In this document: positions 52,795 to 58,555 of the stretch, in pieces | Position numbering within the stretch: the first letter of the stretch is position 1 | Layout: every line of letters starts with the position of its first letter | Origin: Ruditapes philippinarum | Lineage: Eukaryota | Assembly: GCF_026571515.1 (NCBI RefSeq) | Contig: NW_026857252.1 | Span: 62,001 to 126,000, forward strand | Length of the DNA: 64,000 nt | Direction: 5' to 3' | Notes under the pieces: model-generated | The model's input: the letters and a program-made list of their open reading frames with translations, nothing else | Told to the model about the DNA's origin: nothing | The model's database searches: none | Program-made: the position numbers and the translations under genes

Positions 52795-53005
52795 GGTAGG
52801 TCACTTGCTTCTCAACGCTACTGGTTCAAAATACCATGGACTTAAGATGAAGCTATCCAGCTAGCTTATGGAAAGTCGTTAATTCTACTTAGGTGCCCGC
52901 TCGTCTTATAAAAGAGCACGGACGGACACCCCTGATGACTTTTTCTTTCAGTAAAGCCGGAAAGTCGCCATATTACCTTGACAGTGTGTGTGGAGATTAA
53001 AATAT
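52795..53005 (+). mobile_element. Degenerate SINE-like repeat (related copy at ~55838-56005)
   Basis: Shared GAAGCTATC...AAAGTCGCCATATTACCTT; GGTTCAAA B-box-like motif near the 5' end. Confidence 0.5.
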
Positions 53006-54362
53006 TGAATGGTAGGAAAAAAGATATTCAATTTGAAGCAATGAAATTTCAGACGTTAATGTAAGGTTGCAAAGCTTCAAATCATCTCACTTTATTAACT
53101 ACTCAATAAATCCAAGGCAAAGACAAGTTCATGTCATATAATACATATAATACGCCTTTAGGCATTCAACATACTCATTAACTAGAGGTGAAGAAAGTTT
53201 AGAGTGGATAATTTTACTGGCAAAGTGCTATGATAAAATGTCAAATGTTCAGTTGATTTAATAATTACATTAGATATAAACCTTCCCTCGTTCTTTGGTC
53301 ATTTCTTTAAACTATTCCGCTAATCTGCTTTGTCTTGAAGCGAAACGGTCACGATATAGGCATGAATGATAATAATTTGTTGCAATCTTACGGCACACAC
53401 CTATTTATATATATGTACATCTATATAAAGTCCATGCAATTACTATAATCATGTTGTTTACTTAAAGGATAGGGTTAAACAGTGCATATGTGTGGAGATA
53501 CTAATAGTACTTTTATGCTTTATCTTTTATCCGTTTGAGCTGTTAATTTAGATGAAATTTCCTTACCTATTTTGTCTAGAACTGAATGATACGAAATATT
53601 TGAATTCTAAAAAGATAAAGCTGAATTTATCTTACTTGCTATATGTCTGAAGGTATCATTTTAAACCTTTAACATATTTATCCCCTGATAGCTCTATAAA
53701 TTTATGATACATTTCTATTAAAAACAGCTACAATTTTTACGCATTTTTAAAGATGCATGCCTCCAGATGAGCCAAGATATTTCAAGGAAACATGTACTAT
53801 GATTTTAAAGAAAGTAAAAATATGCAAGTAATAAAATGCATCTTATGTGCAATGAATGACTGATTTTGCAGTATTTATTTCCATATTTTCCTCTGCGTGA
53901 CTAACGCAGTTAAGGTTTTTTTCTTCATATTTTGACTCATTTCTGTTCATGTGTAAATTACTTTCTTTTGTTTAATTCACGACATTTTACCTTTAATATA
54001 CATTTTGTTACTTGACACTGACAATTCTGTACTTTCTACTCTTATACAAACAAACTGTCCCTGATTGATGCTATGGTCATTATTTTCTAGAGCACTTGCT
54101 GTACACTATATAAGACATATCGTTATTCCCTAGTGGGCAAAAAATAGAGGTTTTTATATCTAATAAAATGACAGTTAATGTGTAATAAGGTGATTCCTGA
54201 AATAATATTACAGAAACACCTTGATATGATATATCTCAAATAATAATAAAAGTACTGTATTTACAACTTTATATATAATTATGACCGCTCGAGCAAACGC
54301 ATCTTGCTTTCAAGAAACATTGTACAAATAAAAGGACATAAAACTCATTGTTGTTGTTATCA

Positions 54363-54571
54363 NNNNNNNNNNNNNNNNNNNNNNNNNNNNNNNNNNNNNN
54401 NNNNNNNNNNNNNNNNNNNNNNNNNNNNNNNNNNNNNNNNNNNNNNNNNNNNNNNNNNNNNNNNNNNNNNNNNNNNNNNNNNNNNNNNNNNNNNNNNNNN
54501 NNNNNNNNNNNNNNNNNNNNNNNNNNNNNNNNNNNNNNNNNNNNNNNNNNNNNNNNNNNNNNNNNNNNNNN
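54363..54571. other. Assembly gap (probably hides the neurotrophin start codon and signal peptide)
   Basis: Run of N; the reading frame is open from the right edge of the gap. Confidence 1.
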
Positions 54572-56602
54572 CTGAACAATCACTCAATACTTACACAGAT
54601 AGACAAAAGAACACAGCAAATGCAATAGATCCTAGCATTGATTTAAGAGGGTTATATTCTACCCTAAAGGAGCATCCGGCATTGATGGACAGGCGTCTCA
54701 AAATAGGAGGGAGAGTACCACCGCCGATCCCCGAGAGTGATTTAGCCAGAGGTGTACAATCGAGAAGTGTAAGTATAAGATTTCCAAAATACTTTCAATT
54801 AAATAGTGTAAAAAGCTATATCTGATAAAATATGTAACGTGCTTTCATAACCTAGCGGTCGCTTCTTAAAACATTTGTCACATGCATATATACACCAACA
54901 CATTGCTAATTGATGACAGCGTGATCTCGTAAAGTTCTGGAATTAAAATACATTGCTGGTATATGATTATATATTTTAGATACATTATATGCAGAAACAA
55001 ACTTTCCTGAAACTCAACCCCATTAGCTTATTTTAAACATAAAGTTGAAAAGGCATGAAAATGTTAAACTAAACACTTTTAGATAGTCAGAGCAATTTTC
55101 CGTATTATGAATATAGCAATTTCAAAACCTGCTTTTGTAAAGTCGTCTTCGACTTAAAATTTTACCTGATACATAAAACATTTTACTAGTAATCTAGGGA
55201 TTGCTGACCGTGTTGGTGGGTCAAGCTGTTGTTTCTTTTAGCAAGAAACTTTACATTCATTGCGTAGTACTGGTTGGTTCCGGGAACGGTTTCGAGAGTG
55301 TTTCAATAGCTTCTAATTGAATCGAATTAAAATAAATTCAATCAACTTAACTAAAACATTTTATACATATGCTATATAGGCCTTTGTCTCTCTTCCTCAA
55401 ATTTTTTTTATTATATAATCATTTTATTACAGAAAAGATCGATATTTGACATCGGCGTTGCCCAACCGATTTGTCCATTCACAACAGAATGGGTACAAAT
55501 ACGAAATGCAAGAGACCTAAACAATACTGAAGTGGTCGTGTTTCAACCTAGTGATGACAACCCAAATAGTTTTCAATGGTTTTACACCGTTACCTGTGAT
55601 TATGAGAGTCTTTTATCTGAAAACGACGACTGTCCTCTCTGTTGCAGAGCTGTAAATCATAGACGGTTTGTTATTCTTGTCTAATTAGTCATTAACCTTT
55701 ACCCCGCTTGACTTGTCCATCTCTTTTTCCTGTACAAGACCAGTTGTCATTTTTGGGAGATTTTTATGTTAAGTACTGATTGACTAGCGAATAGTGCAAA
55801 CCACGGTCATACGGAACATGTGCGTTCCTTCTCGAGAGGAAGCTATCGATCTAGTTTGCAAAGTATCGGTGGTTTTACTCACATGCCGGATCATACCTGA
55901 TTTAATCCACGGAGGGGAACCTGAGGTGTTGATTTACCATTAAAGCTGTAAAGTCGCCATATTACCTTTGAAAGTGCCTGTGTGATTTAAAAACAAACCA
56001 AAAATAAACATAGACAAAGTGTTTTAAATAAATCTTAGGATGCTGATATATGTAAAAGTAATATTTTTAAACTAGACACTACAGTGTATATATGTATATG
56101 ACTAATGCACTTCGTTGTTCAGACAATGCAAAGATGATCGTGGTAATTGTTTTGTCCTCGTCAAGGATAGCCAGTATCCAGACTCCCATATGAAAGTGTA
56201 TTCTTTTCATATAGTTCAGACTCTGACTCTTTGTGTCATAGAAGTATATATCTACGTATTTGTGGTTATTGGCTGTCTGCAGAGATTTTTATAGTCTTTG
56301 CTAGTCTTTGCTTTATGTTCCTTTTATAACTTTATTCTGTATGCAACGTCACCATTTCTATTCTAAGGTTTTGCATGGTGTATTGCAAATACATTTGGTT
56401 AACATGATAAAAATGCCAGACGTATTCATGGTATTTATTAGATTATTTCTTTCGTTTCAGATATTCTTCCCAATGTATACCACGAAAGACCTCCGTCATG
56501 GCATATATAAGTAAGCAATTGGACTCTAATGGCGAGTTTGACTGGGGATACATACAGGTGGATTCAAGCTGTAACTGTGCTGTTACACGAAGACCGTTTT
56601 AA
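54572..56602 (+). CDS. Neurotrophin (NGF/BDNF-family cystine-knot) precursor, 5' incomplete
   Basis: Exons (54572 or 54599)-54768, 55433-55665 and 56461-56602 join in phase with GT-AG boundaries. Product: ...VQSRSKR/SIFDIGVAQPICPFTTEWVQIRNARDLNNTEVVVFQ...FQWFYTVTC...CPLCCRAVNHRRYSSQCIPRKTSVMAY...FDWGYIQVDSSCNCAVTRRPF*. This follows the NGF pattern C-x5-WV, AxD...EVxV, QxFxxxxC, CRxI/V, SxC, WxxIxxDxxCxC. Confidence 0.88.
54599..54768 (+). CDS. Neurotrophin pro-domain exon (may extend 5' into the gap)
   Basis: Open frame DRQKNTANAIDPSIDLRGLYSTLKEHPALMDRRLKIGGRVPPPIPESDLARGVQSRS ending at a GTAAGT donor, phase 0. Confidence 0.72.
55433..55665 (+). CDS. Neurotrophin mature-domain exon 1
   Basis: TTACAG acceptor; 77 codons plus 2 nt with no stop; GTTTGT donor. 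Confidence 0.9.
56461..56602 (+). CDS. Neurotrophin mature-domain exon 2 (last coding exon)
   Basis: TTTCAG acceptor, phase 2; YSSQC...WGYIQVDSSCNC; TAA at 56600-56602. Confidence 0.9.
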
Positions 56603-56745
56603 TAACAATAGATTCCAAACCAATAACATGGCCCATCGCATTAAGCATCGAAAATATATTTGTGATCCAGAAATTAAGATCGAATAATAATGCCCTTATC
56701 CACTGTAACGTCTTACTTTAACGAATCCTTCTTTCTTTCAATATC

Positions 56746-56751
56746 AATAAA
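56746..56751 (+). terminator. Candidate polyadenylation signal of the neurotrophin gene
   Basis: First AATAAA downstream of the stop codon. Confidence 0.45.
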
Positions 56752-57190
56752 GCAAATCGTGTCTAAGAAAATGAACATTTTATATAAAAAAATTAGCTTT
56801 TAAATTAGTTTGTTAGTTTGCGGATTATACATGTACAATAAAAATTTGAATATTTGCTCAGTTTTAAAAAGTGCTTTCTTCTTTGTAAGCTGAAAGGTTA
56901 TAAAAAAATGTTGTGAATTAAACAAATCGGAAAGAAAGGGTGTCCTTGTTACTGATTTAGTTTTTGGCGTAACTCTTATGCTCATAGAAACTTTAAAGCA
57001 CCCTGTTAAAAAAATTAAGTAGTGCTCTTCCTTTTAGGTATAATTCATGATGTCTTGTTTCTTTTTTTATTTTTCTTTTGCTAACTCGTGTGATTAAAGT
57101 GATTAAGTACTTTAGTATTTAGTTTGTATGAAAGTCTAAATACTTTTTGATTTCACATTTTTGCTATATTTACGATTATTACTGCAATTT

Positions 57191-57343
57191 CAGGATCCAT
57201 GCTGTTCGCTATCAGTTTCTCTACTTGTTATAGGGTCTGTAAGCGAACAGCATGGATCCTGATCAGACTGCGCGGATGCGCAGGCTGGTCTGGATCCATG
57301 CTGGTCGCAAACGCACTGTGTTGGTTTTGTCGTGACGCGGCTC
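57191..57343. mobile_element. Palindromic MITE, copy 6 (left end truncated)
   Basis: Same family. Confidence 0.88.
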
Positions 57344-57809
57344 TAATGATTTCTGATGCGCAATGTGCCTTTAGAAAAAAAGCAAATGAAACGTAATAGT
57401 ACTGTCCTCAGACGGACTGCAATTATCACTTGCAATTTCTTTATAGTGAGTATTTGAGTGAATTCTGACATCTTTAAAAGACAAATCTGTAATCTTAACG
57501 AAGTGGATGCAGATACCTTCCTATACATATTCTTAAACATTCCATTTATTTCAAAATAAAATGTTAAAGCTATTTGAGAATTTTCTTTTTGTTGTTGTTG
57601 TTGTTGTTGTTGTTGATGTTGCATATAACATGCATATAATAGCACTACATTCCCTTTAAGGGCTGACACACGATAATATGTTTATTGTGACAATGTGGTG
57701 ACATCGCAAAAATGTAAAGCAACAGTCGACAATGCGCTATGGCATTTTGGTAATGTGGCAGTACCAAATACGGTATCTCGTAAGTGCCATTGCGATATAC
57801 ACATAGCTC

Positions 57810-58555
57810 GCAACAACGAAAACACGAAACAACGATGGTGAAAAGTCTAAATTATAGTGAAATCACTACGGTGAAAAATCGATAATTCGATGATGAAAGG
57901 TCGAAAGTAGCAAGGTGAAAATCGAAATAACGCAACCAAGATTATGGAAAATCCATATAATTGCGTGTTCTTACCATCGTGTTTTTGACCTTTCACCATC
58001 TAAGTTGCGTTATTTCGATTTTTCATTTTAATTTCAATCATCGTATAGCTAACTTTTTACCATTGTGGTTTCGTTATTTTTAAATTTCATCATTGAACTT
58101 TTTATTGTGGTGGTTACGACTATCACCATCGTTTTTTCGAATTTTCATCATCATTGTTTTCACCATCGTAGTTTCGCCTTCATGTCTGGCATGCGCACAG
58201 AGATAATAACAATGGATGACGATATAAGAAAATATTTGTACCAACTGAAGGATTGAGTTACAAAGAAACAATAATTTTAATGGCTTTGTATTATGTTGTG
58301 AGCATATGGTGAAAATACAAAAGTTTGTTACTTCTAAAAACCGAAACCGATGATAAAAAGGCAGGTTGACGATGGTTAAAAGTCGAAATTACGATGATGA
58401 AGAATCAAAAGTACGATGGTGAAAAGCCGAAATAACAAAACAACACAACGTCGAAAGTACGATGGTGGAAACACGTAATTATATCGAGTTTTCACCAAGG
58501 TGGTTTCGTTATTTCGACTTTTCATCATCGGTCTTCTGACTTTTCGCCATCATAC
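57810..58555. repeat. Degenerate ~20-bp minisatellite arrays in alternating orientation (fold-back-like element)
   Basis: ACGATGGTGAAAAGTCGAAAT-like units arranged in +, -, +, - blocks. Confidence 0.7.

Follow-up and report, generated by a model that had tools for sequence, protein, structure and literature searches.

Introduction

ApNT of Aplysia californica (ACZ37087-9) is a neurotrophin precursor of 291-294 aa. Its pro-region is long and acidic, and an insertion precedes the last strand pair. As far as the account of Kassabov et al. (2013) given in PMC3966541 goes, both a pro-form and a mature form of ApNT are secreted, and the protein activates MAPK, AKT and PLC-gamma via ApTrk and contributes to long-term facilitation. 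The vertebrate neurotrophins NGF, BDNF, NT-3 and NT-4 have a pro-region with a furin-type site, and their precursor lies in one exon (PMC2772990). Multi-exon neurotrophin genes have been published for other invertebrates: the Daphnia pulex NT gene has 6 exons, with the knot distributed over 4 of them, and the sea urchin gene Sp-NT2 is also multi-exon (Wilson 2009, PMC2772990). The neurotrophin of Platynereis has an RSKR site (PMC4812194).

We analysed a locus of the Manila clam, Ruditapes philippinarum, within a stretch of 64,000 nucleotides, here called the window. An earlier note on this DNA had described a hidden, intron-split invertebrate neurotrophin gene with three in-phase GT-AG exons that encode a pro-region, an RSKR site and a 122-aa mature domain with six cystine-knot cysteines. 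As checks it had named the Pfam NGF and Spaetzle models, an AlphaFold comparison with NGF, reads across the two junctions, a phylogeny with ApNT and other lophotrochozoan neurotrophins, and a search for Trk and p75 partners.

Comparison with described neurotrophins

The clam protein and ApNT share the dibasic site, the motifs C-x2-CC, QWF.TVTC and DW.WIQ...SC.C, and a Pfam NGF score above the cut-off. They fall into the same tree clade, and the exon 2 peptide finds ApNT at an E value of 2.8e-12. Over exon 2 the two proteins are about 45% identical (45% by BLASTP, 44% by phmmer). ApNT differs in its greater length, its acidic pro-region, its insertion and its long branch.

The clam protein resembles the vertebrate neurotrophins in the context of the six knot cysteines, in its predicted fold (TM 0.62-0.85) and in having a pro-region with a furin-type site, and its RSKR is the same as that of Platynereis NT. 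However, its identity to the vertebrate proteins is about 22-26%, and it has C-x2-CC where they have G-C-R-G. The gene layout differs as well: in the clam, the mature domain and the cleavage site are each split by an intron, whereas the vertebrate precursor is encoded in one exon. Compared by their published layouts, Daphnia NT and Sp-NT2 are like the clam gene in that the precursor, including the cystine knot, extends over several exons, but the exon numbers and positions are not the same. With these two genes on record, an intron-split layout is not new among invertebrate neurotrophins.

Exon-intron structure of the clam neurotrophin gene

Reading and translating positions 54100-56900 gave three exons on the forward strand that join in phase (Table 1). 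The visible part of exon 1 supplies 65 residues of the pro-region and closes with ...TCG AGA AGT (R-S), followed by GTAAGT. Exon 2 begins with AAA AGA (K-R) and covers 77 residues; its last two letters, CG, stand before GTTTGT, which makes this a phase 2 end. It contains ICP...WV, a conserved N-x-T sequon, QWFYTVTC and C-x2-CC. Because RS ends exon 1 and KR opens exon 2, with a phase 0 intron between them, the RSKR site is made only in the spliced message. Exon 3 completes the split Arg codon, adds 46 residues, and ends with a TAA stop codon at 56600-56602. The mature domain after KR therefore has 75 + 1 (split codon) + 46 = 122 aa. Thus, the exons, the pro-region, the cleavage site and the length of the mature domain were all as the earlier note had read them. 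Its cysteine assignment held in part: the six cysteines align with the knot cysteines of BDNF, but the mature domain has eight in total, the other two being in the C-x2-CC motif.

Table 1. Features of the clam neurotrophin gene. Positions are those of the window. P0060 is the RefSeq protein discussed in the text; X1 and X2 denote the sources of the intron-less contigs.
Feature	Position	Strand	Basis
Exon 1, visible part: pro-region with conserved family motif DLRGLYSTLKEHPALMDRRLKIGG and the RS half of RSKR	54574-54768	+	100% identity to P0060 aa 14-78; alignment to mollusc, annelid and nemertean pro-regions
Intron 1, 664 nt, GT..AG, phase 0, ends TTACAG	54769-55432	+	Joint of 54768 to 55433 in X1 record 2
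Exon 2: KR of the cleavage site and N-terminal two thirds of the mature domain	55433-55665	+	100% identity to P0060 aa 79-155
Intron 2, 795 nt, GT..AG, phase 2, splits an Arg codon, ends TTTCAG	55666-56460	+	X2 record 14, X1 record 7
Exon 3: C-terminal third of the mature domain (SQC ... DWGYIQVDSSCNC)	56461-56602	+	100% identity to P0060 aa 157-202
3' untranslated region, minimum extent	56603-56950	+	X2 record 14 to 56950; X1 record 7 to 56791

A genome search with exon 2 showed that this exon is present in a single copy. Neither strand near the gene has further convincing coding ORFs, and a search of 53000-58000 against Rfam gave no match.

Existing annotation

NCBI RefSeq contains a protein of 202 aa named 'venom nerve growth factor 3-like [Ruditapes philippinarum]' (P0060), which we found by searching with the Mercenaria mercenaria homologue of exon 2. 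The three exon peptides are identical to it over the residues listed in Table 1, residue 156 corresponds to the split codon, and the junctions are the same. P0060 is the product of the clam neurotrophin gene. The exons were searched singly, and tests of the whole product were done on P0060.

The gene is therefore not hidden, as had been claimed: RefSeq already has the exact exon model, and the gene is missing only from the prokaryote-style ORF track. Gene, family and the intron-split invertebrate layout are all on record and already known, and the reading is a correct rediscovery. An exon model derived from the raw sequence alone matches RefSeq to the residue, which means that a spliced eukaryotic gene was correctly reconstructed. 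The protein was called 'venom nerve growth factor 3-like' automatically, after its best hit and by similarity only, and a venom role is without support. The label hides the orthology of the clam protein to ApNT.

Transcription and splicing

Four runs were mapped on 54572-57200, and the intron-less contigs come from one 2015 sample of one study. X1 record 2 (258 nt) joins exon 1 to exon 2 and skips intron 1 between its GT and AG. In X2 record 14 (562 nt), 55664/5 is followed directly by 56460/1, again with a GT..AG piece skipped, and the contig continues into the 3' untranslated region. In X1 record 7, the last 10 letters of exon 2 sit before 56460. Both proposed joints, 54768-55433 and 55665-56461, are thus present in intron-less contigs of the 2015 run set. 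The RNA support consists of two low-depth contigs (depth 3-6) of one sample, and the RNA label of the runs is a guess. Since exon 2 is single-copy in the genome, the junction contigs do not derive from an intron-less DNA copy in this assembly. We conclude that the clam neurotrophin gene is transcribed and spliced as read. X1 record 1 spans 54575-54745 and runs 180 letters further upstream, indicating that the transcript continues beyond the visible edge of exon 1.

The run X21, which is labelled RNA-seq, was dropped as expression evidence. It behaves like a restriction-ligation library: 85% of its mapped reads continue into unrelated sequence, and its loose ends all lie at GATC sites (54628, 55437, 56667). 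One of these ends maps to contig C1101, which has no similarity to the clam neurotrophin gene. An alternative acceptor at 54628, hinted at by X21, was dropped with it.

Membership in the neurotrophin family

The Pfam NGF model (PF00243) matched P0060 with 45.6 bits (cut-off 27, E 8.7e-12), the match spanning positions 8-110 of its 112, and the Pfam Spaetzle model (PF16077) gave no match to P0060 at E <= 0.01. In a sequence search of the PDB with P0060, all 18 matches were neurotrophins; BDNF came first at 1.8e-6, in an alignment that pairs up the six knot cysteines. A profile built from 37 homologues, with the clam protein left out, likewise matched neurotrophins only, NT-3 among them at 1.9e-16.

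We also compared the exons one at a time. Exon 3 alone scored 23 bits against Pfam NGF (cut-off 27, E 9.1e-5), and its best PDB matches were NT-3, BDNF, NT-4 and NGF, with two weak unrelated chains lower down. Exon 2 alone had no match in Pfam or the PDB. Therefore, the family is visible from exon 2 only via its homologues or via the whole protein.

The AlphaFold model of P0060 has a pLDDT of 83.6, with 86-96 in the mature domain. In Foldseek, the 36 best PDB matches of this model were all NT-4, NT-3, NGF or BDNF, with TM scores by target of 0.62-0.85. The model of the Mercenaria orthologue (pLDDT 81) gave the same outcome for its own 36 best matches. An NGF-type fold is thus predicted for P0060, in line with the earlier note. 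By sequence profile and by predicted fold, the clam protein belongs to the NGF family. Family profile, PDB matches, predicted fold and the identity to P0060 agree on a bivalve neurotrophin-like ligand, as the note had proposed.

Orthologues, phylogeny and intron positions

HMMER with the exon 2 peptide against 1.84 billion representatives returned 52 homologues. The best of these was the Mercenaria mercenaria protein 'venom nerve growth factor-like', which is 79% identical over exon 2. Homologues from this and further searches include Aplysia ApNT, a Patella 'neurotrophin-3', and proteins of Haliotis, Pomacea, Babylonia, scallop, pearl oyster, Saccostrea, Solemya, Mya, Mactra, a chiton and a nemertean, together with those of the annelids Owenia, Ridgeia and Paralvinella. 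The homologues share the pro-region motif L.GLY..LK..P.LM.RRL.VG, the K/R-R site, the N-x-T sequon, QWFYTVTC, C-x2-CC and DW.WIQ...SC.C. Their K/R-R stands in the same alignment column as the RSKR of the clam gene, and the six knot cysteines are conserved in 38 homologues. Conservation across molluscs, annelids and one nemertean extends to all eight cysteines and to the pro-region motif. Both the motif and C-x2-CC occur in the clam gene and in most homologues; as group features they were derived from the alignment made here and are not a published definition.

In the maximum-likelihood tree, the clam gene and Mercenaria form a pair (99/97), which belongs with Mactra and Mya to a clade of heterodont clams (98/97). 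This clade is nested, with moderate support (88/76), in the clade that contains ApNT. The ApNT-containing clade is apart from two other NGF-domain gene groups of the same genome. ApNT and Tubulanus are on long branches, and their exact placement is unsure.

One residue past the exon 2 end, about 20 of the database homologues of this exon break off or run into unrelated sequence, and several others open with text that looks like intron right ahead of K/R-R. Among these are P0008, which is gastropod-like, and a Paralvinella protein that is annotated. Taken from mis-called fragments and not from mapped loci, this pattern suggests that both intron positions may be old and common to molluscs and annelids. 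Besides these intron positions, which seem to be old, the family has a conserved fourth pair of cysteines.

The 5' end of the gene

A run of N (54363-54571) lies just 5' of the visible exon 1, and exon 1 or the transcript extends 5' into or over this masked stretch. The earlier note had proposed that the signal peptide lies in this gap. P0060 has only 13 residues before the visible exon 1 peptide. The orthologues of gastropods, chiton and scallop have a hydrophobic N-terminus and 60-100 further residues in the corresponding region. By length alone, the 13 residues are too short for such an N-terminus. The annotated models of Mya and Mactra start hydrophilic, and the Mercenaria model starts within the pro-region. 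A 5' exon is most likely missing from all the heterodont clam models; alternatively, secretion is unusual in these clams. A tblastn search of the window with 11 homologues for an upstream N-terminal exon gave nothing beyond chance. The TATATAA at ~54272, which the earlier note had read as in keeping with its signal-peptide proposal, is present but uninformative, as the window has 63 copies of this motif (~1 per kb).

Receptor genes in the same genome

A p75NTR-type gene was found on the minus strand of contig C9546. One of its exons encodes four TNFR cysteine-rich domains, for which the best PDB match is p75NTR at 1.5e-27 and the next receptor follows at 6.5e-13. Another exon scores 38 bits (cut-off 25.6) for the p75NTR transmembrane domain, and the gene also has a death domain. 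The partner search proposed in the earlier note thus succeeded for p75; for Trk it identified no gene in the clam genome, in an exon-by-exon search made without a mollusc Trk query, which is a weak search.

Several Trk candidates were rejected. PF16920, which was tried as a Trk-specific model but has become a general LRRCT model, had a single weak match in a 1080-aa open frame. The DNA pattern for DYYRVGG gave one chance match between stop codons. The two best single-exon tyrosine kinases have activation loops that resemble those of ROR and of MuSK/Nrk. Beside the p75NTR-type receptor, the genome holds a sizeable set of other NGF-domain genes, on which no comparison seems to exist so far.

Proposed function and alternative explanations

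We regard it as very probable that the clam gene is the single-copy, spliced R. philippinarum orthologue of the ApNT-type lophotrochozoan neurotrophin. Judging from the family, the precursor would be secreted and cut after RSKR by a furin-type convertase, and the 122-aa mature chain would form a three-disulfide cystine knot. The extra cysteines of C-x2-CC may form a fourth, family-specific disulfide. The mature protein would then dimerise and, by analogy with ApNT and ApTrk, may signal via a Trk-type receptor tyrosine kinase, a p75NTR-type receptor, or both.

A first alternative concerns the receptor. The protein could have a neurotrophin fold and yet not be a Trk ligand in clams, acting instead on the p75NTR-type or another receptor, perhaps in an immune or developmental role. 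The clear presence of the p75NTR-type gene, beside a search that found no Trk, fits this idea, and cystine-knot ligands are known to be able to switch receptor classes (PMC11087794). However, the failure of so weak a search says little, Trk genes have been reported in Lottia, Aplysia, Lymnaea and annelids (PMC2772990, PMC4812194, PMC3966541), and the orthologue ApNT acts through ApTrk. We consider a ligand that bypasses Trk unlikely. Another concern is that the locus is a decaying or non-secreted copy, that is, a transcribed pseudogene without a working 5' end. The low RNA depth, the short annotated N-terminus and the lack of a visible signal peptide would agree with decay. Against this, the three exons are open and their canonical splice sites are in use, and every family-conserved residue is intact, including the eight cysteines, the sequon and the cleavage site. 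In addition, the gene is the sole copy of its type in the genome, sits on a short branch beside the Mercenaria orthologue, and has a transcript contig that extends at least 180 nt further 5'. A pseudogene is very unlikely.

Spaetzle, coagulogen and NGF have a common cystine-knot fold, and a Toll ligand of the Spaetzle type was weighed for this reason. In Foldseek, the P0060 model matched horseshoe-crab coagulogen at E 7e-3 and Spaetzle at E 2e-2 (rank 38), both behind the neurotrophins. This distant match and the common fold are what speaks for Spaetzle, whereas the Pfam results point the other way, all significant sequence and fold matches are neurotrophins, and it is another gene group of the genome, described below, that passes the Spaetzle cut-off. 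Of the three alternatives, a Spaetzle-type ligand is the least credible, and an ApNT-type neurotrophin is the reading we retain.

Other NGF-domain genes of the genome

Beyond the clam neurotrophin gene, the genome contains at least 12 NGF-domain genes, and in each of them a single open frame covers the domain. Among the single-exon genes is P0063, 'nerve growth factor-like [R. philippinarum]', whose genome locus (L002) is 100% identical to the RefSeq protein, which confirms the genome as that of the Manila clam. Like the clam neurotrophin gene, the single-exon genes match Pfam NGF and have the knot, with their own signal peptide and a basic pro-region. In contrast, they form a separate clade (92/87), have the whole precursor in one frame with seven cysteines, and occur in tandem arrays. 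They are also more BDNF-like (3.5e-14, vs. 1.8e-6 for P0060), and the exon 2 search did not find them at E <= 0.01. The copies on C4951 form a second further group, which passes the Pfam Spaetzle cut-off.

Wilson (2009) suggested that sea urchin NT and NT2 are ancient bilaterian types (PMC2772990). A tentative proposal, which we think has a small chance of being right, is that the clam genes represent three deeply separated lineages with the NGF fold: an intron-split ApNT type, a tandem single-exon BDNF-like type, and a Spaetzle/NGF intermediate, the first two being ancestral to bilaterians. If this were true, molluscs would keep both ancestral neurotrophin types, and 'the' mollusc neurotrophin would be of the NT2 type and not the counterpart of vertebrate NGF/BDNF. 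Another possibility is that the single-exon genes are a retrogene-derived venerid expansion.

Repeat in intron 1

Intron 1 of the clam neurotrophin gene contains an interspersed repeat at ~55188-55363. A first look at the genome gave 1542 candidates for this repeat, and 39 scored copies elsewhere are 77-85% identical. The read depth over the repeat is 400-900.

Orthologue models and their 5' ends

We compared the annotated orthologues of the window gene from heterodont clams (n = 4; P0004, P0061, P0001 and P0060). The Mya and Mactra models have a hydrophilic start, and in the Mercenaria model the first residue already lies within the pro-region. Judged by its length, the Ruditapes model (P0060) has only 13 residues before the visible exon-1 peptide. 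In the orthologues from gastropods, chiton and scallop, the N-terminus is hydrophobic. A 5' exon is probably missing from the clam orthologue models.

The homologue search with the exon-2 peptide also returned five long database proteins (P0026, P0043, P0052, P0048 and P0033), which have lengths of 700-2455 aa and match the peptide separately at up to 11 places. They represent either tandem arrays whose genes were fused into one model or genuine multi-domain proteins.

The N run, intron 1 and run X21

The N run at window positions 54363-54571 reflects masking and not a gap in the assembly, because the copy of this region in the searched R. philippinarum genome (L001, equivalent to window 53933-57163) has letters there. 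An interspersed repeat, roughly 150-170 nt long, lies in intron 1 (window 55188-55363). A first look at the genome gave 1542 candidates for this repeat; the scored copies were 77-85% identical, and the repeat reached very high depth in run contigs. No match to it was found in Rfam.

When sequencing run X21, which is labelled RNA-seq, was compared with window 54572-57200, the reads ended at GATC sites and continued into unrelated DNA, with one read end leading to another contig (C1101, L051). X21 looks like a restriction-ligation (Hi-C-like) library; therefore, its coverage is not evidence of expression.

Other NGF-domain genes of the genome

At least eight further NGF-domain genes were found (L002-L008; contigs C1078, C7532, C4626 and C12899), four or five of them in tandem on C1078. 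Each encodes a signal peptide, a basic pro-region and the entire domain in a single open frame. They scored 57-71 bits against Pfam NGF, resemble BDNF more closely (3.5e-14) than the window gene does, have seven cysteines, carry the RefSeq label 'nerve growth factor-like' and form a separate clade in the tree.

On contig C4951, a shorter cystine-knot gene is present in five copies arranged in tandem (L009-L011 and two other places). The copies passed both the Pfam NGF (42.5 bits) and the Spaetzle model (34 bits; cut-off 27), and their branch in the tree was very long.

Receptor genes

The genome also holds a p75NTR-type receptor gene. A single exon of this gene contains four TNFR cysteine-rich domains, for which p75NTR is the top PDB match (1.5e-27); after these come a transmembrane domain of the p75NTR type and a death domain.

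Location of the parts of the p75NTR-type receptor gene
Locus	Positions	Strand	Contig
L018	8451-9188	minus	C9546
L013	1357-1659	minus	C9546
L019	3039-3305	minus	C9546

Two receptor tyrosine kinase domains, L021 (C8340) and L022 (C5773), are each complete in a single open frame (PF07714, 335 and 314 bits). Their activation loops suggest ROR-like and MuSK/Nrk-like kinases.
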